Shown in pieces: positions 3,705 through 24,440 of a DNA stretch of 64,000 nt. Position 1 is the first letter of the stretch. Every line of letters starts with the position of its first letter. The stretch is from positions 186,001-250,000 of the forward strand of contig NW_026855294.1 of the NCBI RefSeq assembly GCF_026571515.1, in the 5' to 3' direction. Both the position numbers and the translations under genes were made by a program. The DNA is from Ruditapes philippinarum. Lineage: Eukaryota. The notes below the pieces were generated by a model. That model searched no databases. It saw nothing but the letters and a program-made list of their open reading frames with translations, and was not told the DNA's origin.

Positions 3705-5405
3705 CGGATTTATAATACTGGAATCTTCTTTTTTAGAGAAAAAAATGAGATTTCTTTATACATTGACAGCAGCCTTGTATATAAAACTATAGAAACGTCA
3801 CGATTATCCAATGAAAATTGACGTTACAAACGTGCAGTATTATAAGACACAGAGTAAAACACATAAACGCTTTGAAAGTGATATTAACAAAGTTTGTCTA
3901 TCAAAATCCTTGTATCGTATTGATAAATGGTATACTGTATACCACTAGAACCAAGTGCAGTTTTCAATATTTTCATCAAAATGTAAATTTTGTACAGCAG
4001 AAACCAAACGTTCTCTTTACATCCGCTCTTTTTTTAAAGTGCGCAAAATGTATGCTCTTCGATATACATGCATTTGTATATACGAGATTACTTTCCATTG
4101 TAGGCTTACACAACCTTTACAGTCCAAACCCAATCTGATCGATATGGAGAATAATGGATTTTAACAAATAACACATACAATCGGTTATACTAATGACATG
4201 AAACTTTTGTCGAGCTTTGACATTGAAATGGCTATATGAACTGAATGGCCGATTATTATTTTTTACAACCCATCTTTGGTTTGCAACCGTTTACACCTGT
4301 CTAAAAGAACCCAACGATTTAGAAAAAAAGTATAAAGGAATATAAAAAAATCTACAATAAACTGTAACCAGTTGTACATGGAAAACGCAGAATCTAATAA
4401 AACGAATGATATTCTTTTATACAGATTTTGTCATAATCAACTTTCATCTGAGAAATCTCGTGAGAAGAAAAATGTGTTGAAATTTTCATTATTTTGCCTC
4501 TTTATTTGTTTAAAATACTTCCAAAAACTAGTTGTAAACAGATATTCAGGAAAAATAGTAAGTCCGTGCCACGCTAATTGGTCAGTTCATCATACAAACT
4601 GGGGGCAAAAAACATTCATAATTTTAGGGAAATTTTCAAGCGAAGATTGCAGACCATCACCAGACGGCTGATCTTGATCTACACTGGTCACATGGGTATT
4701 TTCAGTAGCCACCAACAGGCTAAAGGGATTCTCAACAAAGACCGGAACCATTTTCACGTCTGAACAATAGCTTTCAGAGATTTATTTTCACACGTTCCAA
4801 TTATGCTGATGTAAAGATGGTGGAAATTTCTAAAAAAAATGAGATCCCTTTTACTAACAATGTAAATAGTAAGAACTGAAGTCTAAATTTACAGTTATGT
4901 AAGATGTACACACGGACTTCAGAACCACAAATAAATTGCAATAAAAAGATCCCAGTATTCAGATATAGAGGAAAAAAACTGGTAACAGAAAAAGCCTGTA
5001 TCATATTGTGTTCTTATAAAACAAAATTATGATCTCTTTATCAAATTTATTAACGGGCTTGGTTGATAAAACTTTGTGCTAACATTTAATATAAAGCCTA
5101 TCCATGAATAGATATATAGCGTCTGAAGAATGTCCCAATGTAGAATGTCCCGATCACCCCTTTACAACAACCGTAAACATTTTTTTTTGTCTTCCGATTA
5201 GTGTTCTGTTCATTGTAAAGCGATACCTTTTGCAAATAAAGCAGTCCAGCAGTAATTATCCGAGAAATAAATGTTAATTATAAATTCCTTTATCATTGGG
5301 TTAGGTATTCGGGTGCAAAATAACCAAAAGACCTGTTAAAACAACAAATCGTGCACTATCTAATGTTAATGCACGCGTGTGCTAAAAGAACGATTCATTA
5401 AATTA

Positions 5406-5846
5406 TCAAAAGAGTTTATAGTTGAGATCGTAAACTACCACAGCAGCTACAGGAAGCATCGCAATACAATCGGTCAAACCATCGCCATCAAGCAGCCACT
5501 GCTGTCCGGTATTCTTTTCGGGAGTATTTGTGTCTGACACAGCCGGTTTGTATATGTTCCAGAACCAGTGCATTATACTGCACGCCCACATAGAATAGCT
5601 GGAAAAGGAAAACAAACCTTTGTTGATCAATTTAATAAAGACTGGGTGACAGGCATGTATAATTGATTCAAAGTGAAACCATGTGTGGCGGCATGGTCAA
5701 TTGGTTTAACGCGTCGGACTAGCTATGGATCTCTAACCCTGTCGGTTCAAACCCCGTCAGGGGCAAGCCGTCGTTTCCTTGAGCAAGAGACATCACACTC
5801 GTTGCTCAGTACTTGTTGGTTCTAGGAACGAAATCGAGTGTGTGTT

Positions 5847-5881
<35 letters not shown>

Positions 5882-8800
5882 TAATAATAATAACAGTATT
5901 TAACGAGAGAACTCATTTGAACAACAAATCAGTCTTCCACAAGACCCTCAACAAGGAACAGTATAAGTTTAACATATTCAAACTATTTAAATATATTAAT
6001 GTTAATGCATACATGAGATTATCAATTTGCATACATCGATGTATGATAATATCTCAAGTATAATGTTTTCAAATGGTTCACAGATGTAGCAGACTTGATA
6101 TAATCAGGAAAGCCGTTCCAAATTAAACAAGAGACTTGCGCAATTGTTCAATATTTGTTCTAGGGGTATAAAGTTGAAAAAATCAGACGATGAACGCAAA
6201 ATGCGAGTATAATAACTGACGAAAAATGAAATCATTCAATAAATAGGAAGGTGCCTGATTCACGGTGCATATCCATATCGGTACCCTCTTTGCGAAATCT
6301 GCTGAAACGGTACCCTCTTTGTACATGCACAGGCCATTCTCTGCTCAAAACAAATCAAGCGATGGATAACAAGCCAGTAAAAATTCACTGTAATAAGGAA
6401 AGGAGGTATGACACGTAGAAAAGATGTATACCACGGAACACTAGAATGTTTTATCTATTTCCTGAATTTGTCATGTGCCCGTTTTTCATGTACTGCAACT
6501 TCACAATACGCTACAAAAAATCAACATGTCTTACCTCGCCCATCACCTCGACATACTTTTCTGGCTGAAATGAACCTGTGGCTTGATTATATATGCATCA
6601 TACATATCTAATATGTTCATTTACATATCATCTTCGGACAAATGGCAGTACATTGTCAAAATAATGGTAAAATTCATAAAAACACCCTACTTTCAGTTTT
6701 GCAGCGGCACGGGCTACCTCTCTTCATTTGAATTTTTATATCACAGGTACCGTCTCATTTTTTTTAACACATAGGTATACTCAATGCACGACATATGCTT
6801 TTAATTGCGCGTTAATCGTTAAGTATGTAATATTTACATAAATAAAGAAATGTTACATACCTAACGAATAACGCAAAATAAAAGCATATGTCGTGCCTTG
6901 AGGGTACCTATATGTGAAAAAAATTGAGAGGGTACCTGTGATATAAAAATTCAAATGAAGAGAGGTAGCCCGTGCCGTTGCAAAAACCGAAAGTAGGGTG
7001 TTTTTATGAATTTTTCATTTATTTTTTTGACACTATACTGCCATTTGTCCGAAGATGATATGTATATGAACATATTGAATATGTATGATGCATATATAAT
7101 CAAGCCACAGGTTTATTTCAGCCCAAAAAATATGTCGAGGTGATGGGCGAAGCAAGGCATGTCGATTTTTTGTAGCTTATAGGAATTTGTAGTACATAAA
7201 AAAACGGGCACATGACAAATCAGCACATAGATAACACATTCTAGTGTTCCGTGGTATACATCTTTTCTACGTGTCATACCTTCTTTCCTTAATATATTGA
7301 AATTTTAATGTATTGTTATCAATCGCTGGTTTGTTTTTAGCAGAGAGTGGCCTGTGCATGTGCAAAGAGGGTACCGTTTCAGCAGATTTCGCAAAGAGGG
7401 TACCGATATGGATATGCACCGTGTGATTATTCATTATCTTAAGCATCATAATAGCTATATGAAAGCGGAGTTCAGAAAATAGTTCAGCGGATGGAGTGTC
7501 ATGATCTTTGTCTAGAATTAGTCTTGCAGCTCTCTTTTGGAACTTAATTTAATGAGTTCATCTTCTAGAAAAGACGTACAGTTATCGTAAATTATGCAAC
7601 AATAATCAAGATGTGGTAAAATATATGCATTGTAAAACATTTAACGTACAGGTATTGGTATGAATAATTTTATACGAGATAATAAATGTAACAGTGAGTT
7701 GCATTTTTCGAGAACATTATCAATATGACTTTGCCAAGACAAGGCCGGTGTTATCAATTGTGATACCCAGTAATTTTTCTTCAGAGCTACAAACAATTTG
7801 CTCTGTTTTATACGAAATACAAGGATTACTTTCATAAATATAATTTTGCTTGTGTTTTGAGGAAATATACATGACCTGAGCTGTGTTAGCATTGATAGAC
7901 TCACACCATATGTTGACATTTAAAAGATCATGAGTAAGAGAATCAACTACCCTGTTAAGGGATACATCAGATGTTGAAAGGGTGGTGTCATTAGCAAAAA
8001 TTTCTGTTGTTTTTTGTTGTTGTTTTTTTTTCAATAGACAAAGGTGGGTCATTGATATAGATTACAAACAGTATAGAACTTGAGGAACTCCAGTAGTTAC
8101 TGAACTTGACTCTGAATATAACCTGGATATGCAGGCCCGTCGTCACGATTTTGTGAATGGTGCGGCCAATTTGGTTGGATTTAGGCAGAATCTAGGGGGG
8201 TACGGGGGCATGCTCCCCCGAAATTTTTTTTATTCTAGGATGCTCTCAGAGGCGTTTTCCCGTATATTTGGCACAGTGTACAGCTTGCCGCTAGTACATG
8301 TTATAGTAATATGTCAACGATTTTTTACAGATTTAAGTGCGTCGTAAGTTTTCAGGGTGAAATTTAAGGTTCGCATGACGGACGGACAGGTGTACATAAA
8401 AGATGAATACATGTAATTGATATTTGGCAAATGAAAAATAAACAATAACTGATGTTGTTTTAATTCTTTAGATGCATTTTTATCTGATAATTACAAATAA
8501 ACAATAACAAGAAATATTACAGTACATTGTACCACTTTTTGTTTAGCAGTAACTTGTTCACAAAAATCTTACACAACAGAGTCTCATTTTATGTAAATTT
8601 GCTGAGGTTGTCTGTAAATGCTAGGATGTCGTGTGCAAGCATTACACCGAAAAAGTACTCGAACGTCCTCATCTGAGCAGAAACACCCAGAATTCGCGCC
8701 CTGGTCTCGGAGTCCTTAGCGTTACACTCGTCCCATAGGTCCTTTAGTACAGTGTAATTATCAATCACACTTTTGAGACTTGCTGCACGGACTGCCCAGC

Positions 8801-11800
8801 GAGTAGGGCACAGAGTTCTAAAACCCGGCGTATCAGGTGCTAGATCTCAAGAGACTGTCACGTTTAGAAGAATACTTAAGTAAATTAGAAATTGCTTATC
8901 AGCGATGCGTGTTTTTTGTTTGTTTGTTTTTTCACTCATTTTTGGCCAAAATATTGGTCCGGCCAAGGCCGGACCGGCCGGACCATCGACGACGGCCTTG
9001 AATTATGTAAGTTTGTTCGGTTCTGTAATCAAATAGGAGGAAAACCAAGCAACTGATGAAGGGTTAAGGTTATACATTCTAAGCTTTTCAATAATAATGG
9101 AGTAAAATAATAATACATGTAGTGATAATAAAAGTAATTTTATCAAACTTCTGTAAATCAGGTTTATATGTAGATAATATGATTCACAAGTTATCGTATA
9201 TTTTTGTTTGTAATATTGTAAATGTAAACTTTATGTCATAATTCAAATTGTCTCTCTTTCGTTTTTGCTTGCTTTTCATGGTCTGTCGTTCCTCCTTTGG
9301 TTGCACGGGGGAGGAACTGTTACACGAAGGATGGAGTTTTTATGATAACTTGTTCAGGAGTTCTTGTGATAACTGTCACGGAGTTCGTCGGAAAACATAT
9401 GTATACACTACAAAAACAGTCGTCAAAAATGGTAATTTTCATTTTTCAAAAATGAATTTTAGGTGCTAAATTAAACTTAAATGATGAAGCTTGTCTTACA
9501 CTTGTATTAAGTGTCAAAAACTAATTCATAGGCCATTTTTCATCGCCTTGCTTAAAATCTGGTAGTTTTTAGTGAAATTTCCTAATTTTCCAATTCACAC
9601 GTATTGACCTGTTTATTTCTGGTCTTCATCCTTGCCATACATAATTACCTAATTATAATGCGAAATTGCAAACATAAAGCACCGACTAACAGATTTATAC
9701 CCGAGGAAGTTCACAGATCTCAGATACCCGGGAAATTAAACAAGGAAGTTTGTTTCCGATACTCCTTTAGACTATTTTATAAATTGGACGTGTATACTAA
9801 TCAGAGAGATTCTTTAAATTATTATACTAATTTTAGAATGACCAATGAGATTCCCGGATTTCAGGTTGTAACTTGAAACTGAGCAATGAAAATCATTCTA
9901 ATTATTCAGTTATTCTATGTATATTTTATAGTAGGTTAAACCGATGTCAGACAGACTTTTTCCGAAAGTGCTGATTCTAATTTAGTTACGAATTAGACCA
10001 CTCTAATGTATAGAAAATAAAGACATTGAATATTTCATTTGTGAGCAATATTAAATGTCATATTGGTATAAAACATGTTTACATCTAGCAGACCTATAAT
10101 GTCACACATTTTATAGCATATATTGTTGTACGTTGTAAGAAGAAATGAAATCTTATTTAAAAATGAAATTATTCAAAGCAATTTCATCGCCACATACGTA
10201 CCCAGATTTCACAGCCAGCCATCCAAGAAGACATACGGAATTTAAACATGACACACTTTGCACGATCACTGTTAGATATGGATACGAAGGTTTGAGTCTG
10301 TAATTCAACAAAATCATCACAGGCACGTGGAAGAGTCCACAAACAATACCACTTAAATAAAAGAGTAGAAATACATTTATTGTAAAGAAGACTAAAGAAT
10401 AAAAAAAGAACAATATTGAGAAAAAAATGAGGGGATATTTCTAGTTTTATTTCAAATGATTGGTTCGATGCACGCGTTCAATGGTTGGTTGGGGTTGGGT
10501 TTTTCGTCGCACCAAGACAGTAAAGGCGTCTTCTGCTTTTCTGGTGGAGGAAGGCCTTGTGTGCCCTTCAATGTATTTACGGACGAGCACCTGAGTAGAA
10601 CAGCCAACGTTCCGTAAGCTAGCTGGATAGTGTTCTCACATGAACGAATCCGAAGTCCCAAGTGAGATTCGAACCAAAAACGGTGAAGGGCAAATAGTTA
10701 CGTTTGTACTTTGATAGTAACAGTGTAATGTGTCACATTAAATTGTGCTTTATAGTAGAAGATCGTGCGCATGTGGTAAGTAAATAATAATGTTAAAAAA
10801 TCGGATACCGTCAGGGGTGTGCAAAGTGATTGTTTTGTTAACAAGGGAGACAAATGCGTGTTTCTTTTTATAAAGCATGTACCCCGGGAGTGTTGAGTAC
10901 AATAATATTCAAAATGTTGTCTACTTTTAATATTGACCTTCTTTTAAAAACGTTCCCAATATTATGTTCCATTTGATATGGCAAGTATTGAACGCTTAAA
11001 AAAAACTTTTTATAATCTTATTTATTTATTATAATCCTATTCATTCATTCATTCATTCATTCATTTTGTATTTATATGATAAATAAGAATACCTATCTAT
11101 CGCGCATTACCTTATAGTAAATGCAGTTAGAACAGAAAATCTGTCAAGCAGGCACGGTAGCAGGAAACATCGCCAACCAATCTCCTCACCAGCTGCCCGT
11201 AGAAAACCGAAAAACCTACTTTTATTGTGCTGTTTACGAATCTCCACTATAGCATGTAATGCAAGAAATTATAATAAGAAATGTGAAAATATATAATTGC
11301 AACGTGAAAAATGTAAAAATTGATTCGCGAAAAATGTAAAATTGATATGTGAAAATATAAAAATGATACGTGAAAAAATGTGAAAAATATAAAATTAATA
11401 TGTGAAAGATAATTGAAATGTGAAAAATATATAATTGTAAAGTGTAAAATATAATCAGATGGTCGATGAAACAACTCCTCTGTGTGCACAAAATGTAATA
11501 TGCCTATTAAAGTTCATCTATAAAGCTAATAAGACAAATGATCCGTGTCACGACAAAACCAACATAATGTGTTTGCGACCAGCATGGATCCAGACCAGCC
11601 TGCGCATCCGCGCAGTCTGATCAGGATTCATGCTGTTCGCTATCAGTTTCTCTACTTGTACTAGGGTTGGTAAGCGAACAGCATGGATTCTGATCAGACT
11701 GCGCGGATGTTGTTTATGTTGGTTTTGTCGTGACGCGGCTCAAATAGTATCCAGGTTGCAAGAATAAGGACAACATGCTCTCACTGTACTCCTCAATTTC

Positions 11801-14109
11801 TTTTTGTCACAAAATTTTAACTACTAAATGAAACATTGAAATTTCAAGAAATACGATCCAAACATACATTGTCGTAGGAACTATGGCATTGCAACAAAAT
11901 GAAATATGAATGTAGCATGTGCAAAATGTATATTGGAAATGAGAGCAGGATCGCTACAATGGGTTCACGTTACGAATACATTTTTGTTCATGAGTTTGCT
12001 CATTAAAATATTGTATATGAATGAAATCAAAATATGAGTATTGTAACGCAGGCAATGAGGTAACAGGTAATTTCAGGAACAGTCCTGACATTGTCTAAAA
12101 TGCTGTACAAAGAACACATGCAGCAGAACTACAAAACAAAAATCTGATAAAGTTTAAGGAGACCTGATCGACCAACTAACTCGCATGATTTTAAATAGAT
12201 CTGTTAGTTAGTGGCCTACTTGTCGTGGGACAGCAATGAAAATTACGTACGTCCGATAAAGCTTTGTTCATTTGGCTACCTAGGTTCCTTACTATATACA
12301 AGATAGAAGACATTTTTAAATGACGGGACTGGAAATAATTTTTCAAGGTAATTGTCCCATTTGATGTAGCTAGGTCTGTATGCAAAATTTTTGATCCACC
12401 CCGTTTTACAAGATTAATTTTTCAATGATCCAAATGTTCAACGCTTTTTAATCAAATCGGGCTAAGAATACATTTGTTATTTAGTCTCATTACATTTCTT
12501 AATTATCTTTTGCATATCTTTCTGTTTTCAGTGCCCCAGCTGATCTATATAGGAAATAAAAAAAAATATGTTTTAGGCTTTTGTACCTAAATGCATTTAG
12601 CTTGATACCAGGTACGGCAGCATTTATTTGTTGATATCGTGTTAGAATCGAAACAATATTATCCAAATCAGTGATTTTGTCGCTTGGATGCGCCCTCGTG
12701 ATATAATTACTTACATCCGAACTTCAAACAGTGATTTTATTAAGCGATAAAACTACTGTTTGGGATATTTTATTTCTTAAATAAAACACGGCAGTCAGGT
12801 ATATATGTATACGTATAATAGATAAGTGCCATAAAACAAATACTTCTATCTCTTGCACACGTTATCCTTAGCAAAAAGCTAATATCTCTGGATAAAAAAG
12901 TGTCATTTCGGCAAAATGCCTACGGCTGCATATTGAGCATATTGAGCTCTATAAGTCATCCAGAATTAAATAAATTCTCACCTTGGTTTGCCCACCCCAT
13001 GACAACAGCTAAAAGCACCGCCAGAGCGCTGAAAATGATGCACTTGACTTTCTGAAATGGAAATACACTTAAAGGCCTATTATGCACCGGAAATGTATGT
13101 ATTTATTGTTTGCGCCATTTTTTGGCAATTAGTACAACGATTCTGATTTAGTATTTGTATGGAAGTCAAAATACTACTCTGTTTACGTTTAAATTTTATT
13201 ACCTTAATGACAGACAATTTCACATTCATCGCTACTTTCTTTAGGTAACAAGCATCTGACATGCTCTAAAATCATTATTTAAACATTATTTAAACATTAT
13301 AATACTTTCTTTGCCTTTTCTAAAGAAGAAAAAAAGTTTCTGAGGCATAATATGCCTTTAAGAATAAATAAGATTTAACAAAACAAAAAAAAACGTTTTG
13401 TTTATGCCTTAACAAGAAAACGAAACAACAAAAGCATTTGTACCAGGCAAGCTAAAATATTTGTACCGAAATGACTGAAATGTTCATAATTTAACAACAA
13501 ATACATTTCTACCCTATTTGTTTAACACAACAACAAAAACATTAGTAAATAATTTGCTGTAATGTAGAAATGTTTATGAATTAACCACAAAATATTTGTA
13601 CCCCGATTACCTGATATTTACTCACATATTTAATAGCAAAACATTCCATATATATAAATTAATGAAAATTTGTTGTTGAATCTTTCAAATTATAGCCGAT
13701 TAATTATTCTAAATTTATTCAATAAAATAATAAGTAGTAGCATAATTCCTTATTGCATAAAGAATACAAATGTACATAGGACCCATTAATTTTCTACTCA
13801 TTCAATTTTTGTTTTTGTTGTTGTTTTCTGACAATCATATCGATCATGCCCTAAATAAGTCAGGTACTAATTATCAACGGCAGGTAAAGTTCACATATCA
13901 CTGCATTTATGGAAGTTTTTACTAACCTCATTTGCACCCGACAGTTTACTCATAAAAGACATCAATTCTCCATTTCCTGCTTCCCATATTAGTGCTGTCG
14001 CACCTGGGAAAAACATGGCCAAGGCCAGAAACGAAAAACTCGCGTTACGTAGAATGCAAACCCATAATGCAGTAATGCTCAAAACAAATGCTGCGAATTC
14101 CAAACACAT
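5406..14109 (-). CDS. CPBP/Abi (type II CAAX protease) family intramembrane glutamic endopeptidase, copy A, about 225 aa, 5 coding exons
   Basis: Exons (minus): 14109-13927, 13051-12982, 11192-11111, 10351-10202, 5598-5406. All introns are GT-AG with compatible phases (0,1,2,2). Translation contains GEEIGWR (EExxxR), GIVCGLFH (FxxxH region) and SMWACSIMHWFWN (HxxxN) among hydrophobic helices. An extra exon between exons 2 and 3 cannot be excluded. Confidence 0.85.
5683..5847 (+). mobile_element. tRNA-derived SINE (paralogous copy at 17277-17465)
   Basis: A-box-like TGGTCAATTGG and B-box-like GGTTCAAACC, followed by a TTTCCTTGAGCAAG..TTGCTCAGTAC..TTGGTTC core; same position in intron 4 of both CPBP copies. 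Confidence 0.7.
6261..7423. mobile_element. Non-autonomous foldback DNA transposon with Transib/RAG-like ends
   Basis: Almost wholly palindromic (arms about 570 bp). Ends are CACGGTG...CACCGTG with 5-bp TSD TGATT (6256-6260 and 7424-7428). Confidence 0.9.
8132..9000 (-). mobile_element. Internally deleted hAT transposon with a transposase fragment
   Basis: TIRs CAGGCCCGTCGTC / GACGACGGCCTTG. Minus strand about 8594-8846 reads ..GFRTLCPTRWAVRAASLKSVIDNY..RARILGVSAQMRTFEYFFGVML..ILAFTDNLSK, the hAT (ZMYM1-like) TRW region. No clean TSD. Confidence 0.85.
11536..11745. mobile_element. Palindromic MITE (GGATCC-containing family)
   Basis: Hairpin element GACAAAACCAACAT..GCGACCAGCATGGATCCAGACCAGCCTGCGC..ATGTTGGTTTTGTC; three copies in the window; absent from copy B intron 2. 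Confidence 0.8.
13069..13361. mobile_element. TTAA-target MITE family 2 (Kolobok-like)
   Basis: TTAA|AGGCCTATTATGC...GCATAATATGCCT|TTAA. Decayed counterpart at the matching position in copy B (about 22217-22438); related copies at 26383-26732 and about 31590-31918. Confidence 0.7.
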
Positions 14110-14544
14110 TATTCCTCGCGAAATGTAGCGCAATTGCAAGAAAAATGCTGTATTCTATTTATGCGATTATTTCAACATAATTGTACACCACAAGTCAGTG
14201 TGTTTACCTCGGTTGGTATGCGTAAATATTTACGGATGTTTAATATTACTTCCTTTTTCGCACGTTTAATTAGGCCATTGTTAAATAAAAGTTTTCCTCT
14301 CGTGTACTGATAGTTAATATGTTGTAGTACAAAGACGCTTGTACGAGATTAGATATTTTACTTCAGCTGAACAAGCATTGGAAACGCAGACATTTTTAAA
14401 ATCAACTGATGTGTTATACGTACGACCTTACTAGTGCATGTATGTGATGAAATTAATACCGATACGAACAGGTTATGTAGTAAAATTGATGAAGGAGATG
14501 CGTGCGATAGTCATTTAATCCTTACCTACACCCTTGAACACAAA

Positions 14545-14617
14545 CGCGCGCGCGCGCGCACACACACACACACACACACGCACGCATACACACACACGCA
14601 CGCGCACGTACGCGTGC
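14545..14617. repeat. (CG)n/(CA)n microsatellite
   Basis: Seen directly in the sequence. Confidence 0.9.
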
Positions 14618-14924
14618 AAAGAATAACTCGCAAGAACTTGCGACGCCCTAGTAAAATTTTCTAACTGCAGCTGAAATATGGGCTTGACTATATCCCCGAC
14701 TTATTTTCGCGAACATATACTCTTTGATATCTATGTGACATTGATCTTTCTCCATGGTCTTTAATTGAAGCAGTAAAAAATTCAAGTCTCGATAGAAAAT
14801 GTTTCCTGATTGGACAGTTCCAAAAAGTCATCTCACAAAAGAAACCCAAAAACAACTACATGTAAAGAGCAGATTTTTGAATATGATTTTTTCTTCGAAA
14901 CATAGCAGATACTTCCATCCGATC

Positions 14925-16085
14925 ACCACTCACACAGCAAGCACTGCTTGCTGAACACTACTCATACAACGGACACTTTATGCTGAGCACTACTTACACA
15001 ACGGACACTTCATTCTAAGCACTACTTACACAATGGACACTTCATTCTAAGCACTACTTACACAATGGACACTTCATGCTGAGCACTACTTACACAATGG
15101 ACACTTCATGCTGAGCACTACTTACACAACGGAAACTTTATGCTGAGCACTACTTACACGATGTACACTTTATGCTGAGCACTACTTACACAATGGACAC
15201 TTTATGCTGAGCACTACTTACACAACGGACACTTCATTCTAAGCACTACTTACACAATGGACACTTCATGCTGAGCACTACTTACACAACGGAAACTTTA
15301 TGCTGAGCACTACTTACACGATGTACACTTTATGCTGATCACTACTTACACAACGGACACTTCATGCTAAGCACTTCTTACACAATTGACACTTCATTCT
15401 TAGCACTACTTACACAATAGACACTTCATGCTGAGCACTACTTGCACAACGGACACCTTATGCTGAACACAACTTACACAACGGACACTTCATGCTGAAC
15501 ACAACTTACACAACGGACACTTCATGCTGAGCACTACTTACACAACGGACACTTCATGCTGAGCACTACTTACATAATGGACACTTTATGCTGAGCACTT
15601 CTTACACAATGAACACTTTATGCTGAGCACTTCTTACATAATGGACACTTTATGCTGAGCACTTCTTACAGAATGACAAATCATGCTGAGCACTTCTTAC
15701 ACAACAGACACGTTATGCTGAGCACTTCTTACACAATGGACACTTCATGCTGATCACTAATAACAAAATGGACACTTCATACTGAGCACTAATAACACAA
15801 TGGACACTTTATGCTGAGCACTAATTACACAATGGACACTTGATGCTGAACACAACTTACACGAAGAACACTTTATGCTGAGCAATACTTACACAATGGA
15901 CACTTCATTCTTAGCACTACTAACACAATGGATTCTTCATTCTAAGCACTACTTACACAACGGACACTTCATGCTGAGCACAACTTACACAACGCACCAT
16001 GCTTGCTCAGCACCACTCAAACAGAAAACACTGCTTGCTTATCACCACTCACACAGAAAACACATCTTACTGAGCACTACGCATA
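14925..16085. repeat. 32-bp minisatellite, about 36 units
   Basis: Unit CTTACACAAYGGACACTTYATGCTGAGCACTA, period 32 (e.g. 14991, 15023, 15055). Confidence 0.95.
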
Positions 16086-16286
16086 AAATTATGCTGATGG
16101 AAATATGATGAAAACTTCTAAAAAGTGATATTTCTTTTACTGGCAACAATGGAATTAATAATAGTTCGAGGCTTAGTTTGACGGAATCCGTCGTTGAAAT
16201 GTTTCCTTAAATTGCAAGACAGTCCACAGCCACCTATGTAAGATGTAACCGGATTGGAGAAGCACATATAAGTAGCATATCTAAGT

Positions 16287-16450
16287 TGCAGTGGCCTAGT
16301 GGTCAAGGTGTCTGCCGCTCAACCCAGGGGTCATGGGTTCGAGCCCTAATCGGGTCATATGACACCAGTACTGGTTGGTTCCAGGAAGCGAAAAAGTGAT
16401 TTATAGAAGTTGCAAGAACTTGTTTCGCAATTAAGCTTCAATAAATATAT
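16287..16450 (+). mobile_element. tRNA-derived SINE
   Basis: GTGGCCTAGTGGTCAAGG (A box) and GGTTCGAGCCC (B box); related copies at about 38851-39012 (+) and 47999-48122 (-). Confidence 0.7.
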
Positions 16451-16979
16451 TTAATCTACATAATTATAAGCTGCAATCAAAAGATCCCAGTATTCAGATA
16501 TAGAGAAAAAGCCTGGTTTATATTGTGTTCTAATGAGTCGAAATTATGATCAGTTTATCAAATTTATTTACAAAACTTTGTGCTAACATTTAACAATCCA
16601 TTAATAGGTACAACTATATATAACCTCTGAAGAACGTCCCTCTGTAAAGCAATCACCTCTTAGCAAAACCGTATTTTTTCCGAAGTAAGACTACAAAACA
16701 ATGTAACCCATTTTTTGTCTCCCGAATAGTGTTCTGTAAAGATTGTACTGTTTATTGTAACACGATACCTTTTGCAAATACTGCAGTCCATACATACCAG
16801 TAAATATCCGAGAAAAAATGTTAATTATGAATTCCTTTATCATATCATAAAACACGGGTTACGTATTCGGGTGCAATATAACCAAAAGACCTGGCAAACA
16901 TAGATTATCTGAACAACAAATCGTGCGCTATATGATAACGCACGCGCGTGCTAGAAGAATTATGCATTAAATTATCACG

Positions 16980-19900
16980 TTAAATCATAGTAAAGAGTTT
17001 ATGGTTGAGATCATAAACCACCGCAGCAGCTACAGGTAGCATAACTAGACATCCGGTCAACCCTTCACCATTGATCAACCACTGCTGTCCGGTATATTTT
17101 CCGGGAGTATTAGTGTAAATGCTGCCTAACACAGTCGGGTTGTATATGTTCCAGAACCAGTGCATTATACTGCACGCCCACATAGAATAGCTGAAAAAAG
17201 GGAAAAAAGAGTTCAATCAAGACTCAACAAAATGCATGTACGAGTATAACTTACTAGTCATTGCAGTAAAACGGCATGTGTGGCGGCATGGTCGATTGGT
17301 TTAATGCGTCGGACTAGTAATCTATGGATCTCCCTGTCAGAGGCAAGCCATTGTTTCCTTGAGCAAGAAACATTACACTCGTTGCTCAGTACGGGTTGGT
17401 TCCAGGAACGGATTCGAGAGCGTGCCTATAAGCTTATAGCGTCCTACACAATACTTCTAAAATAAATTCTGTATTTGTTTGTTTTCTTCGGTTTGTTTAA
17501 CGGAGCACAATCACAATTTAGGTCATATAGCGCTGAAGCAGGAGGGATGATTTTGGTTAACCTCGGCAAGGTTTTGAAGCATATAATGTTGTACGTTGTT
17601 AAAAAGAAATCAATTTTACTTAAAAAATAATTCACTCCATTCAAAGCAATTTCATCGCCATTTACGTACCCAGATTTCACAGCTAGCCACCCATGAGGAA
17701 ATGCGGAGAGTAAACATGACACACTCTGCACGATCACTGTTATATATGGACGCGAAGGTTTGAGTCTGTAAGTCAACAAAATCATCACAGGCACGTGGAA
17801 GAGTCCCCAAACAATACCACTGAAATAAAAGAGTAAAGATACATTTATTGTTAAGAAGACCACTGTGCATATCCATATCGGTACCCTCTTTGCGAAATAT
17901 GCTCAAACGGTACCCCCTCTGAACATGCACAGGTCATTCTCTGCTAAAAACAAACCAGCGATGGATACCAATCCAGTAAAATTTTATTGTAATAAGGAAA
18001 GGAGGATTGTCACGTAGAAAAGATGTATACCACGGAACACTAGGATGTTTTATTTTTGTGCTGATTTGTCATGTGCCCGATTTTCATGTACTGCAACTTC
18101 ACAATAAGCTACAAAAAATCGACGTGTCTTGCTTCGCCCACCACCTCGACGTATTTTTCGGGCTGAAATGAACCTGTGACTTGATTATATATGCATCATA
18201 CATATTTAATATGTTCATAAACATATCATCTTCGGACAAATGGCAGTATATTGTCAAAAATAAATGTGAAATTCATAAAAACACCCTACTTTCGGTTTTG
18301 CAGCGGCACGGGCTAACTCTCTTCCTTTGAACTTTTATATCACAGGCACCCTCTTATTATTGAACACATAGGTACCCTCAAAGCACGACATATGCTTTTA
18401 TTTGCGTTAATTGTTAAGTATGTAATAATTACATAAATTTAAAGTAAAAAGTATTACATACACACTTAACGATTAACGCAAATAAAAGCATATGTCGTGC
18501 TTTGAGGGTACTATATGTTACAATACCTATGTGTTCAATAATGAGAGGGTGCCTGTGATATCAAAATACAAATGAAGAGAGGTAGCCCGTGCCGCTGCAA
18601 AACCGAAAGTAGTGTGTTTTTATGAATTTTACATTTATTTTTGACAATATACTGCCATTTGTCCGAAGATGATATTTATATGAACATATTAAATATGTAT
18701 GATGCATATATAATCAAGCCACAGTTCATTTCAGCCCGAAAAATATGTCGAGTTGATGGGCGAAGCAAGACACGTCGATTTTTTGTAGCTTATTGTGAAG
18801 TTGCAGTACATGAAAATCGGGCACATGACAAATCAGCACAAAAATAAAACGTCCTAGTGTTCCGTGGAATACATCTTTTCTACGTGACATACCTCCTTTC
18901 CTTATTACAATAAAATTTTACTGGATTGGTATCCATCGCTGGTTTGTTTTTAGCAGAGAATGACCTGTGCATGTTCAAAGAGGGTACCGTTTGAGCAGAT
19001 CTCGCAAAGAGGGTACCGATATGGATATGCACCGTGAAGACTGTAGAATAAAAAGCATTACTGAAAAAAATGTAGGAAAAGATATGTTTTATTCCAAGTG
19101 ATTGTTCGATTAACAAGTTCATTGGTTGGTTGGGTTTTACGACGCACCTATACAGAAAATGTCAAATGGCGTCTTTCCAGCTTTTATGGTGGAGCAAGAT
19201 CTCAGGTATCCTTCAATGTCACTGACACCTGAAAACAACCACCACCAAAGCTAGCTGGATAGTTTTCTCATATGAAAGAATTCTGTCCCAAGTGAGATTG
19301 GAACTTATAGCGGTGAGGGCAAATGATTTAAGTTTATGTTTAAGTGATGTTTATACTTTGTCAGTAACAGTCTTAAAGCCTCCAGATTAATGCTAATTTT
19401 CATGAACAATTTTGAAATATGTGAAAACGTATAATAATGTGTAGTGACCAAAAGGAAGCAATTGCACCTAATTAATTGCACTTGCAATTCACGTAAATTA
19501 CTGAAATGAGGTAAAAATGTGCAAAAAAAGCCCTTACTGCATTAGTAACGCAGTACAAATATAGTCATAATATTGGAAAAATTAACCACATATAACATGT
19601 TAATTATTACTTGAATCTTTAACATTTTTACATTCCTGAAGTCTAAGTAATATATTTTTAAGTTATTGAAATATTTTGGATTATCTGGAGGCATGTAGCT
19701 TTAATGTGTCTATAGAAATGTGATTTATAGAATAAGGTAACAAAACAGAACCGTGTGGTAAGTACAAGTAATGTTAAAATAATTGAATACCGTCAGATGT
19801 GTGCAAAGCTTAGTAAACAAGGGAGACAAATGCATACAGACTGCAAGGTGTTCCTTTTTATAAAGCATGTATCCCGAGCTAGTTGTGTATTATAATATTG

Positions 19901-22900
19901 AAAATGTTGTTTACTTTTAATATTGATATCTTTTAATAACGGACCCAATTTTATGTTCCTTTTAATAAGGCAAGTATTGAAAGATTTAACAAAAGCACCG
20001 CTAGGCGGAGCATAATATGCCCGAAGGTGTTTTTTAGTAAGGATGAAGTATTTGTTAGGCATGGGAATTAAATAAAGTATCAATTGGGGTCTTGTGATCC
20101 CAAAATTAAAAGGGGTCTTATACCCAATATGACAATCATCCTATGAAGTTTGAATATTGTGGGCCAAATGCAACTTATGTTCTGGAAACTGTTTTCAGTT
20201 TTAAGGTACTAGTGACCTTGACCTTTGACCTTGTGACCCCAAAATCAAATCAATAGGGGTCTTGTACCAAATATGGACAATATGATCCGGAAACAAATTG
20301 CTAACGGACGGGCGCCAGGGGGTATAACATAATATGCCCGACATTCTATGCCCGACATTCTTTCGGGCATATAAAAAGCAAAGCGCAGATATTGCACGTT
20401 TTATAATCATATATATTTATTTATTTATTAACATAATAAACAACAAGAACGCCACACTCGCTCATTACCTTATAGTAAATGCAGTTAGAACAGAAAATCT
20501 GTCAAGCAGACACGGTAGTAGGAAACATCTCCAACCAATCTCCTCACCAGCTGCCCGTAGAAAACCGGACAACCTACTTTTATTGTGCTCATGTATGCTG
20601 TGTTTACGAATCTCCACTTTAACATGTGATGCAAGAAATAATAAGATGAAATGTGAAAAATATTAAATTGCAATGTGAAAAATATATAAACGAAAAATTA
20701 ATTATATTATTGTAAAGTGAAAACTATAAAAATGCACTGTGAAATATATAAACGAAATACGAAAAAAATATGGAACTGCAATGTGAAACATATGTAATTG
20801 CAATGCGGAAAATATATCATTGTAACGTGAAAATATGAAATTGCATTATGAAAAATATAAAATGTGAAAAATCACGGATTTATCCGTGGAAAAATATCAA
20901 AATCCAATGTGAAAAATATAAAATTGCAATGCAAAAAAATATAATCAGATCGTCGGTGAATCAACTCCTTTGGCAAAACATTAAATATAACAAGCCCGTA
21001 ACGTCTGATATATTGCACATAGAACGATTGACCCTTACGTTTTTTTAAATGCTGTTCAAAGAACACAAGAAGCAGGACTATGAAACAAAACACACAAAAA
21101 AATCATCTGTTAAACTTCTCTTGTGGAGTCCTGACCGACCTGACCATCTAATTCGCATGATTTTGAATACATTTATTACTCCGTAGTCCGTAACCTACGA
21201 TCGTGGGACATATAAATAAAATCTCGGGACATTTCGCACGTGGCCCATAATGTCCGACTAGCCTTTGTAGATTTGGCTACCTGGGTTTGATATTGAAATA
21301 CTTATATTTACGACATTTTTAAAGGGACTTCACTGAGATTTTTAGAAATGGCGGGACTGGAAATAATGTATTGAGATAATAGTTCCATTTGATGTAGGCC
21401 AAACCAATTACCTGTATGCAAATTTTTGGATCATTAGCTCACTCCGTTATTCCAGAATGATTATTGTTTTCTTGAAAAAATTATCCAAAATTGAAAAACA
21501 TTGCAACGCTTTTTAATTAATTCGGGCTAAGAATAGATTATCAATTTTATCATCTATGTATATTCTTAATCATCTTTTAAATACCTTTCCGTTTTCAATG
21601 CACCAGCTGTTTTATGTAGGAAATAAACAATTTGTTTTAGGCTTTTAGACCTAAATGGAGTTCCTTTCAGCTTTTAATTAAAGCTTCTTATTCAATCTGC
21701 ATTATTTATTATTTGTAATTATTATGTGAATAAAATACTGTTAAAACTTCACAATTCAAAATTTAAAGCCAGCCAAATCCGTATAATATATTTACTAAGA
21801 TGCAAAAGTTATAAGGTTAATAAATGTTGGTTTTAATGAATTATTAGACACGTGTTACTATAAACGTGACGGTACATCATAATGAAATAAAACAAAACAT
21901 TCAAGTGGGTATTATGACATAATAACTTACTTGAATTAGTGTTATAAAACAATTATTGGCTTGCCTCATTCTTTTGCAGTCTTTTTCGTAATCAAGTACG
22001 AAATTTCTTTGTTTTTTTTAAGAAAATAGAAAATAGTCATTGCATTCAAAATGCCCAAGACTTTGCATGGAGTCTGTATTAAGTAAATACTCACCTGGTT
22101 TTGCCCATCCCATGTTAACAGCTATAAGCACACATGCTTCTACGATGCAATAAACGATAGCAACCGCCAAAATGCTGAAAACGATGCACCTAACCGGCTG
22201 AAAAATGTAATATAATGTAAAGGCCCATTCTGCCCCAGAAATGCCTAATGTATTTCTTGGTGTCGATCTTGTAATGGTTTCCAAAGAGGATACTCATTGG
22301 TATTTTACCAGCATCATTTTTCATTGCATTTTTTTTTCAAGTAATAAGCATCTAACATACTTTAAAACCATTACTTAAACATTGTTATCACGTTTGCCTT
22401 TTCTAATTCAGTAAATAAATTAGTTTCTGTGCCTTTAAATTCAGCAAGTTTAAGAATAGATAAGTTGTAATAAAACAAAATACTTTTGTTAAGGACTTAA
22501 CAAGAAAGCGCAACAACAAAAGTATTTGTACCGGGCAAGCTAATATATTTATAATTCAATAACAAAAAATTTGTACCGAAATGGCTAAAATGTATACAAC
22601 GAATACATTTGAATTATCTGAAAACAAAAAAAAACATTTCTACCTGCATATAATTAAACCACAACACTAAAACACTTAAAATGTAGAAATGTTTATAATT
22701 TAACCACAAAATGTTTGTACCCGACTACTTTATTTACTTACATAATATGTTAAATATTATTTAATAGCAAAACATTCGTTATACCAAAATAAATGAAAAT
22801 TTGTTGTAGAAATTTCGATTTATAGCTGATTTATTTTATTCAATTACAATTAATTGGTAGCATAATTTCTTGTTGCATAAAGGGTAAATAGGACACATTT

Positions 22901-23229
22901 GTGCCCATTCAATTTTTGTTTCAGATGTTGTTTCCTAATGTAACGATCATGCCCTTACTAACTATCAATGACAGGTAAAGTTTACATATTGCATTTATGA
23001 AATAAATAATTACATTGGATAAATTTTATAACAAGTTTTAACTTACCTCGTTTGCACCCGACAGTTTGTTCATAAAAGACACAAATTCTCCATTTGCTGC
23101 TACCCAAATCAGTGATGTCGCACCTGGGAAAAACATGGCCAAGGCCAAAAACGAAAAACTCGCGTCACGTAAAACGTAAACCCATAATGCAGTAATACTC
23201 AAAACAAACGCTGCGAATACCAAACACAT
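16980..23229 (-). CDS. CPBP/Abi (type II CAAX protease) family intramembrane glutamic endopeptidase, copy B, about 242 aa, 5 coding exons
   Basis: Exons (minus): 23229-23047, 22197-22095, 20550-20469, 17819-17670, 17190-16980; GT-AG introns, phases 0,1,2,2. Protein MCLVFAAF...AMFFPG...AGEEIGWRCFLLPCL...SGIVWGLFHVP...WLAVKSGYSMWACSIMHWFWN...INGEGLTG...; same intron positions as copy A. Confidence 0.88.
17861..19036. mobile_element. Second copy of the foldback Transib/RAG-like element
   Basis: Ends are CACTGTG...CACCGTG with 5-bp TSD AAGAC (17856-17860 and 19037-19041). The paralogous empty site with a single AAGAC is at about 10388-10392. Confidence 0.92.
19373..19704. mobile_element. TTAA-target MITE family 1 copy in CPBP-B intron 3
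   Basis: Reverse-oriented homolog of 36479-36837, TTAA on both sides, absent from the paralogous site at about 10720-10735. Confidence 0.8.
19988..20376 (+). mobile_element. Helentron-associated (HINE/pearl-like) non-autonomous element
   Basis: 5' AACAAAAG..ATAATATGCCCG, GACCTTGACCTTTGACC core, GGACGG, and 3' hairpin TATGCCCG..CGGGCATA followed by A's; absent from copy A. Confidence 0.65.
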
Positions 23230-23656
23230 TATTCCTCGCGAAATAAAACTCAACTGCAAGAAAAATGCTGTATTCTATTTATGCGATTATTTCAACATTA
23301 TTGTACACCACAATTCAGTGTGTTTACCTCGGATGGTATGCATATAAACGAATGTTCTTACTTCCTTTATCATGTGCTTAATTAGGTCATTGTTAAATAA
23401 AAGTTTTCGTTAAATCTACTGATAATGAATATTCTAGTGCATATAAAGCTTGTACGAGAATAGATATTTTACTTCAACTGAACCAGCCATATTGGAATGG
23501 CAGATATGTTGAAAATCAATAACTGATGCGATTGTGTGGCATGTACGAGCTAATTGTCTGTGATGAAATTAATACAGATGTGTTGGAAAATTGGAAAAGA
23601 TAACTGAATGCGTGCATTATTTATTTAATTCTTCACACTCTGTCTGCTTAGTTCTA

Positions 23657-24440
23657 ATCACACAGCGGACACTGCCTACTGACCATCACTCGCACAACAA
23701 ACATTGCCTACTGAGCAACACGCAAACAGGAAACAATGCTTGCTGAACCCCACCTACACAACAAACACTGCCTGCTGAACCCCAACTACACAACGGACAG
23801 TGCCTGCTGAGCACTTCTCACATAACAAACACGTCATGCTGTGCACTACTTAACAACAGACACTGCCTGCTGAGCGACACTCACACGGAAAACACTGCTT
23901 AATGAGAACCACTCATACAGCAAACACTGCTTGATGAGACTACTCACACAGGGGACACTTCATGCTGTGCACAACTTTCACAACGAACACTGCCTGCTGC
24001 TTAGCAGCACTCAGCAGCACTTACACAGTAAACGCTACTCATATAACGGACACTTCATGCTGTGCACTACTTAAACAACAAACACTGCCTGCTGAACAGC
24101 ACTCACACGGCAAACACTGATTTCTGAGTACTACTCACACAACGGACACCTCATGCTGTGCACTACTTACGCAGAAAACACTGCTTGCTGAGCACCACTA
24201 ACATAACGAACAATTGATGTTGTGTACAACTTACACCACGGACACTGCCTGCTAAGCATCACTCACCAAAACAAAAACAACTGTTTGCTGAACCTACTCA
24301 CACAACAAACACTGCCTGCTCCGCAGCACTCACACAGAAAATACTGCTTGCTGAGTTTCACTCACACAACAAATACTCTTTTCTTACATTACTCACACAA
24401 CGGACGTTTCATGCCATACACTACTTACAAAACGGACACC
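23657..24440. repeat. Diverged paralog of the 32-bp minisatellite, about 24 units
   Basis: CACAACRRACACTKCMTGCTGAGCAC-type units upstream of CPBP copy B. Confidence 0.9.

Follow-up and report, generated by a model that had tools for sequence, protein, structure and literature searches.

A tandem pair of CPBP-family genes from an undescribed animal subfamily in the clam Ruditapes philippinarum

The closest described systems to the genes reported here belong to the CPBP family of intramembrane proteases (PF02517, Rce1-like), which is marked by the motifs EExxxR, FxxxH and HxxxN. They are the archaeal CaaX protease MmRce1 of Methanococcus maripaludis (PDB entry 4CAD), the CaaX prenyl endopeptidase Rce1 of the eukaryotic endoplasmic reticulum, a set of prokaryotic CPBPs that share a loop ending in NGEG, and the Abi/CPBP proteins of bacteriocin self-immunity. 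Here we describe two neighbouring genes, A and B, in a window of 64,000 nucleotides of DNA of the Manila clam, Ruditapes philippinarum (contig NW_026855294.1, positions 186,001 to 250,000; "the window" is this whole stretch, and all positions below are counted within it unless another contig is named). We conclude, with a probability of roughly two in three, that they are tandem paralogs of an uncharacterised animal CPBP glutamic-type intramembrane endopeptidase, that gene B is conserved and gene A relaxed, and that the family descended vertically in animals. A first-pass annotation of this DNA had offered the attractive reading of a mollusc-specific capture of a bacterial gene; the analysis corrects it to a conserved branch of animal CPBPs, one with no counterpart in model organisms among the matches listed. 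The pair are members of a known protease family, within an animal subfamily that is undescribed (a full-text literature search found no paper on it). The advance is modest, since the genes already stand in RefSeq and UniProt as uncharacterised PF02517 proteins.

Two spliced genes of the CPBP family

Gene A (5406-14109) and gene B (16980-23229) lie on the minus strand as head-to-tail neighbours of five exons each, position 5406 being the first base of the stop codon of gene A and 23229 the A of the ATG of gene B. Exon boundaries with consensus GT-AG sites were taken from an alignment of the two genes, which have the same intron positions and the same intron phases (0, 1, 2 and 2). The open reading frames (ORFs) of the region hold the peptides quoted in the first-pass annotation, and its account of a tandem pair with five exons each and matching intron positions and phases agrees with our coordinates, exons and splice sites (Table 1). 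Gene B comprises 264 codons, equal to its ortholog in Mercenaria mercenaria (264 amino acids), which begins at the same start; gene A comprises 243. The copy number in the 1.4-Gb assembly is two, namely genes A and B only. Both are genuine, spliced genes that form part of the host genome.

Splicing of gene B was seen in Logan contigs of two runs from two studies, which join 23047/22197, 22095/20616 and 20469/17819. These joints read CT..AC on the plus strand, that is GT..AG on the gene strand, and three of the four GT-AG junctions are shown in this way by Logan transcript contigs; the joint of exons 4 and 5 is not among them, and the alignment of one contig ends exactly at 17670, the predicted donor of exon 4. 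Further contigs extend beyond exon 2 into the intron upstream of it and suggest unspliced transcripts or DNA. RefSeq already lists gene A as the uncharacterised protein LOC132742797 of R. philippinarum, and the exons of the gene match isoform X2 of this protein at the junctions of exons 1 and 2, 2 and 3, and 4 and 5 (tblastn). This isoform uses an acceptor 54 nt inside exon 4, giving an exon of 10202-10297, and is therefore without SGIVCGLFHVPVMILLNY, the stretch that holds the histidine of motif 2. The full-length analyses that follow used isoform X2 for gene A and the Mercenaria ortholog for gene B, and the exons of gene B itself were searched singly.

All three CPBP motifs are kept in both genes, as GEEIGWR, (W/C)GLFH and HWFWN. 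This bears out the same statement in the first-pass annotation, save that isoform X2 of gene A lacks motif 2. Against PF02517, whose curated cut-off is 22.4 bits, isoform X2 scored 27.2 bits and the Mercenaria ortholog 49.7 bits, so that the Pfam check proposed earlier was passed by both full-length proteins. When single exons were searched, exon 3 alone matched, at 17-18 bits and hence under the cut-off (E 0.0068 for exon 3 of gene B). In an alignment of 23 members the invariant columns are E120, E121, R125, H153, H205, N209 and N235-G238. A profile of the family searched against the PDB had MmRce1 (4CAD) as its sole match (E 1.6e-14), with the motifs in the register GEElgwR/FEELGWR, WglfH/WSLWH and mHlvwN/FHFLIN.

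An AlphaFold2 model of the Mercenaria ortholog was obtained with high confidence (pLDDT 95.6, pTM 0.91). In Foldseek comparisons it matched 4CAD with a template-modelling score (TM-score) of 0.71-0.74 and SpdC (6U0O) with one of 0.60, and it had no other meaningful match. Directly after HxxxN, the segment NP.VLGSIYT..PG...G.QW.INGEG is modelled as a short beta-hairpin lying between long helices seven and eight. The corresponding loop of gene B, NP..LGSIY..PG..G.QW.INGEG, is encoded in exon 5 at 17052-17141.

Neither gene A nor gene B is Rce1, although both belong to the CPBP family. The clam has a canonical Rce1 exon elsewhere in its genome, on contig C8953 (218389-218535), which encodes APISEEFIFRACMLP. 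In a Pfam scan of the genome this exon was found to encode APISEEFIFRACMLPFLVP, which we take to be the motif context of canonical eukaryotic Rce1, and in a six-frame genome scan the same exon (APISEEFIFRACMLPFLVPQFGEGW) was the only PF02517 match above the cut-off. The first-pass annotation had held that grouping with eukaryotic Rce1 would speak against its proposal; such grouping did not occur, for the clam has this separate Rce1-type exon and the genes of the window cluster with bacterial NGEG-type CPBPs. The NCBIfam equivalog model for MmRce1 gave 34 bits, against a cut-off of 425. A role in detoxification like that of microcystinase (MlrA) was also considered and was dropped, as NCBIfam gave no specific affinity.

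Table 1. Exons of genes A and B and repeats in their introns (window positions; CDS, coding sequence; TM, transmembrane helix)
Feature	Position	Strand	Remarks
Gene B exon 1	23047..23229	-	CDS from ATG; TM1-TM2, LWV..R..SF.FLA.AMFFPG; ends in phase 0; from ORF, alignment and contig joint 23047/22197
Gene B exon 2	22095..22197	-	103 nt, TM3; ends in phase 1; contig joints 23047/22197 and 22095/20616, GT..AG
Gene B exon 3	20469..20616	-	IHEHN motif; motif 1 GEEIGWR at 20528-20545; ends in phase 2; contig joints
Gene B exon 4	17670..17819	-	Motif 2 WGLFH, His codon 17795-17797; ends in phase 2; joint 20469/17819; contig alignment end at 17670
Gene B exon 5 and stop	16980..17190 (coding 17190-16983, stop 16980-16982)	-	Motif 3 HWFWN at 17148-17162; last TM helix
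Gene A exon 1	13927..14109	-	Identical to residues 1-61 of LOC132742797 isoform X2
Gene A exon 2	12982..13051	-	70 nt; without 11 codons found in gene B and outgroups
Gene A exon 3	11111..11246	-	Motif 1 intact; 100% match to LOC132742797 isoform X2 residues 85-130
Gene A exon 4	10202..10351	-	Motif 2 with W>C; AFPHGW to VCLLGW
Gene A exon 5 and stop	5406..5598 (coding 5598-5409, stop 5406-5408)	-	Motif 3 intact; LGSIY lost; NGEG to DGDG
Foldback (inverted-repeat) element	17861..19036		Intron 3 of gene B; 1.18 kb; arms 95-96% complementary; ends 42 nt from exon 4 acceptor
Related foldback element	6261..7423		Intron 4 of gene A; 88% identical to the 17861-19036 element; about 1.17 kb, long inverted arms
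Dispersed tandem host repeat	20120..20340		Intron 3 of gene B; unit about 145-160 nt; at least 1897 candidate genome places

Taxonomic range and origin of the family

Family members were retrieved with a profile of gene B exon 5, which in an exhaustive search of 1.84 billion cluster representatives gave 62 matches. The named relatives come from word-indexed searches with full-length members; all carry PF02517, and the range given here and below is that among the matches listed. Within Mollusca the family was found in a chiton (Liolophura), in bivalves (Mytilus, Solemya, Mizuhopecten, Argopecten, Pecten, Pinctada, Mercenaria, Mactra, Mya, Dreissena, Sinanodonta and Potamilus) and in gastropods (Patella, Haliotis and Gigantopelta). 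Beyond molluscs it was found in the annelid Capitella teleta, in starfish (Patiria, Asterias and Acanthaster), in acorn worms of the Hemichordata (Ptychodera and Saccoglossus), in bdelloid rotifers (Adineta and Rotaria), in homoscleromorph sponges (Corticium and Oscarella) and in a nucleariid amoeba (Parvularia atlantis, EukProt Nk52). Roughly ten more eukaryote-type lineages were represented by Logan, ENA or JGI contigs. The earlier view of a mollusc system does not hold, given members in Annelida, Echinodermata, Hemichordata, Rotifera, Porifera and a nucleariid. Among the matches listed there were no vertebrate, arthropod, nematode, cnidarian, plant or fungal members. A scan of metagenomes returned ordinary bacterial CPBPs (generic GEE.GWR pattern) and no eukaryote-type contigs, and a scan of genomes gave largely the same.

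Some of the database entries touch on gene structure. In the clam the introns stand after codon 61 (phase 0) and within codons 96, 145 and 195. The RefSeq model of Gigantopelta aegis (475 amino acids) has a UBE2Q1-like ubiquitin-conjugating enzyme fused to the CPBP protein, the fusion point coinciding exactly with the boundary of clam exons 1 and 2. The model probably reflects read-through or a faulty joining of two genes, and the fusion point indicates the same intron position in a gastropod. The short isoforms of Acanthaster and Saccoglossus start at or near the same boundary, an indirect hint on intron position.

A maximum-likelihood (ML) tree of 78 rows and 281 columns was computed with IQ-TREE under LG+C20+F+G4 with posterior mean site frequencies (PMSF). 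The eukaryote-type sequences form one clade (100/100) on a stem of length 0.99, inside which Mollusca (83/95), echinoderms (100/99), hemichordates (94/91), sponges (97/82) and rotifers (100/99) are recovered; among bivalves, Pteriomorphia and heterodonts group largely as taxonomy has them. The nucleariid sits on a long branch among the animal sequences. As sister of the eukaryote clade (91/85) the tree has a prokaryotic clade with Neobacillus mesonae and a Halobaculum plasmid gene, a clade containing Myxococcota falls outside this pair, and the NGEG-loop subfamily as a whole is separated from other CPBPs with support of 100/99. This pattern fits old vertical descent with many losses and not a mollusc-specific acquisition. 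We infer that inheritance within animals was for the most part vertical, with a start no later than the early metazoan stem and, again, many losses, and any bacterial origin would have to precede the animal radiation. With several phyla and a nucleariid in one clade, the orthologs show part of the spread throughout animals and their unicellular relatives that the first-pass annotation had taken as the mark of vertical descent.

The deeper origin of the family was probably an ancient transfer from bacteria, although that step is unproven. In its explicit form this account has a gene pass from a bacterium into the animal or opisthokont stem, gain introns there and then descend vertically, which makes the horizontal transfer proposed earlier several hundred million years older, and we hold it to be about evenly balanced. 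The part of that proposal that stands is that, outside eukaryotes, the closest relatives are CPBPs of bacteria and archaea. A long stem joins the eukaryote clade to the prokaryotic NGEG-type proteins, the clade is nested among them in the ML tree (91/85), and the nearest Atlas clusters are all bacterial. The named eukaryotic members come from six animal phyla and one nucleariid only, and the NGEG subfamily is mobile, being sparse among prokaryotes and present on haloarchaeal plasmids. However, a tree that unites all 24 prokaryotic members in a single clade was not rejected by an approximately unbiased (AU) test (delta lnL 4.6, p 0.317), and nesting within bacteria, and hence the direction of transfer, is therefore unproven; moreover, further eukaryote-type sequences could widen a eukaryotic range that is known only from the matches listed.

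The same test result, which leaves room for the family as sister to all prokaryotic members, is what one would also see if it were an old eukaryotic CPBP paralog, inherited vertically from an early eukaryote and mostly lost, its bacterial likeness being due to deep common ancestry or to transfer from a eukaryote to a bacterium. The presence of the family in a nucleariid (Holomycota) as well as in animals and the recovery of clades at phylum level agree with such a history. Nevertheless we judge it unlikely, since it needs very many independent losses, no named plant, fungal or other protist member was among the matches listed, and the nucleariid branch is long and lies among rather than outside the animal sequences.

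Vertical descent in animals, as we prefer to read these data, can be carried one step further, in a proposal that we put forward only tentatively and at somewhat less than even odds. Animals may ancestrally have had a second CPBP protease beside Rce1, of bacterial ancestry and with a unique beta-hairpin loop by the active site. It would have been kept in sponges, rotifers, annelids, molluscs, echinoderms and hemichordates and lost in vertebrates, arthropods and nematodes, and it would process a class of membrane-associated substrates, one clam duplicate now being remodelled.

Duplication, unequal divergence and host repeats

The first-pass annotation had attributed the pair to duplication, and a tandem duplication is shown by collinear non-coding blocks that are 70-78% identical, including a tandem satellite at the 5′ end; the duplicated unit spans roughly 4987-16095 (A) and 16504-24439 (B). 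The comparison of substitution rates that it had suggested was carried out on the in-frame parts of the exons, summed, and gave a synonymous rate (dS) of 0.214, a non-synonymous rate (dN) of 0.095 and a ratio (omega) of 0.44. The divergence is distributed unevenly between the copies. When the amino-acid changes (44 in total) were polarised with five heterodont outgroups, 34 were derived in A, 6 in B and 4 were ambiguous; with dS divided equally between the two branches, omega would come to about 0.75 for A and about 0.13 for B. Gene A also has three in-frame deletions, which remove 11 amino acids in TM3, the four codons HSIH of the conserved IHxHN motif in exon 3, and part of LGSIY. At further conserved sites it has W>C in VWGLFH and changes of AFPHGW to VCLLGW, NP to KP, PGK to PEK and INGEGL to LDGDGL; its catalytic residues (Glu, Arg, His and Asn) are retained. 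From the uneven changes, the deletions and the branch-wise omegas, gene A appears to be a lineage-specific duplicate under relaxed or altered constraint, and gene B the conserved copy and presumptive functional ortholog of a gene found in many aquatic invertebrate phyla. The degeneration of copy A had been missed in the first-pass annotation.

The contig that carries the pair is longer than 250 kb. Host repeats in the introns had earlier been cited as an argument against contamination; both the foldback elements and the repeat with at least 1897 candidate places were found there (Table 1), and contamination is excluded by these host repeats within introns together with the spliceosomal introns themselves. 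Because the two foldback elements lie in different introns of A and B, they represent independent insertions after the duplication. The repeat at 20120-20340 was covered at very high depth in each of the four runs and gave many 'goes back' joints, and by its appearance is an abundant, transcribed satellite-like repeat, or one like a short interspersed nuclear element, that is tandem at many loci. Intron 4 measures 4.6 kb in gene A versus 0.48 kb in gene B, and in gene A it contains, at 7641-8146 on the minus strand, ORFs resembling retroelement coding fragments. Upstream of each paralog lies a tandem satellite (14906-16095 and 23637-24439) that is part of the duplicated unit; the two arrays contain His/Thr/Leu-rich pseudo-ORFs and cross-match at 67-72% in many registers.

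Proposed function and comparison with known systems

Judged by its sequence, gene B would encode an active glutamic-type intramembrane endopeptidase. By homology its product is predicted to fold as an eight-helix bundle like that of archaeal MmRce1, in which, by extension from that enzyme, activation of water would fall to the first EExxxR glutamate and the FxxxH histidine, and stabilisation of the transition state to the HxxxN histidine and asparagine. The subfamily-specific beta-hairpin loop directly after HxxxN, between TM7 and TM8, may shape the entry, binding or recognition of substrate. The product of gene A would keep the catalytic residues, with the signature loop and other conserved elements lost or altered.

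The loss of the loop from gene A, and an isoform X2 without the motif 2 histidine, raise another reading, in which the product of gene A, and perhaps that of every family member, would serve as a membrane regulator or scaffold without proteolytic activity, in the manner of bacterial SpdC, CflP and LnsB. The predicted fold matches SpdC as well (TM-score 0.60), bacterial relatives adjoin sensor kinases, and non-catalytic CPBPs of this kind are reported in the literature. We nevertheless regard this as rather improbable, for the catalytic residues are invariant in 23 diverse members, the gene B ortholog included, as expected of an active enzyme, and animals are not known to have the bacterial-type histidine kinases that would serve as targets.

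Prokaryotic neighbourhoods were inspected for leads on function. The NGEG subfamily occurs in 6 of 401 Bacillota genomes, and a sensor histidine kinase adjoins five of the six loci, four of which look closely related. On a plasmid of Salinirubellus sp. SYNS196 the subfamily gene comes immediately after genes for an ABC ATPase and permease and has an SdpI-family gene close by, and the neighbours of the Halobaculum relative are unrelated. The Salinirubellus region as a whole (150720-163247) has three CPBP genes within 8 kb beside the ABC transporter pair and the SdpI-family gene; the haloarchaeal megaplasmid may here carry an island for peptide export or immunity. Taken together, the neighbourhoods are weak and mixed leads that are not safely transferable to animals. 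No bacteriocin or toxin locus lies beside the clam genes in the 64-kb window, and the link to bacteriocin or toxin immunity drawn in the first-pass annotation finds no support at the clam genes and only anecdotal support in prokaryotic neighbourhoods. A recent, mollusc-specific transfer from bacteria that gave a means of toxin or bacteriocin inactivation runs counter to both the distribution and the tree and is very improbable. It would account for the bacterial type of the motifs, for best non-animal matches that are bacterial, and for the one haloarchaeal relative beside an ABC transporter and near an SdpI immunity-type gene. But the molluscan genes share one clade with orthologs from five other animal phyla, the nearest prokaryotic proteins are no more than about 30-38% identical, the pair has no toxin or bacteriocin gene beside it, and the Bacillota neighbours are mostly histidine kinases.

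Several points weigh against our reading of the pair as vertically inherited animal proteases. Some CPBPs with intact or near-intact motifs (SpdC, LnsB and CflP) are reported to be non-proteolytic regulators or enzyme partners. The fold and the full-length Pfam match of gene B were obtained with the Mercenaria ortholog, which is 85-90% identical in exons 3-5. Vertical descent rests on a single-gene tree with weak deep nodes, and, as regards bacterial origin, a position of the eukaryotes as sister to all prokaryotic members was not rejected (AU p 0.317). Finally, of the junction evidence that the first-pass annotation had looked to, contigs gave three joints of gene B, the joint of exons 4 and 5 not being listed, and that the two supporting runs are RNA is no more than a guess. 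In the two runs confirmed as RNA-seq the exons have a very low depth, far below 1x (sampled fraction), so that expression is low in those samples.

With its invariant catalytic residues, confidently predicted fold and distinctive loop, the family offers a tractable target in which a new substrate class of intramembrane proteolysis in invertebrates might be sought, and the clam pair is a natural comparison of a conserved gene with one that is decaying or remodelled.

Compared with known systems, the clam family shares with MmRce1 the eight-helix fold, the motifs in register and a length of about 260-270 amino acids, at about 19% identity. It differs from that enzyme in the extra conserved loop after HxxxN and in the LWV..R..SF.F and AMFFP elements of TM1-TM2. 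With eukaryotic Rce1 the clam genes have PF02517 and the catalytic motifs in common, and Rce1 is a separate gene in the same genome. Likeness to the Abi/CPBP bacteriocin self-immunity proteins is at the level of the superfamily and its motifs only, and, unlike the setting of those proteins, no bacteriocin locus or partner gene adjoins the clam genes. The closest clade in the tree is that of the prokaryotic NGEG-loop CPBPs, exemplified by proteins of Neobacillus mesonae and Pyxidicoccus and by plasmid genes of Halobaculum litoreum and Salinirubellus, and annotated only as 'CPBP family intramembrane glutamic endopeptidase'. These share with the clam family the core motifs, the length and the loop NP..LG..Y..G..G..(W).NGEG..G, and differ from it in their lack of introns, in a more variable N-terminal half and in a sequence identity of 30-38%.

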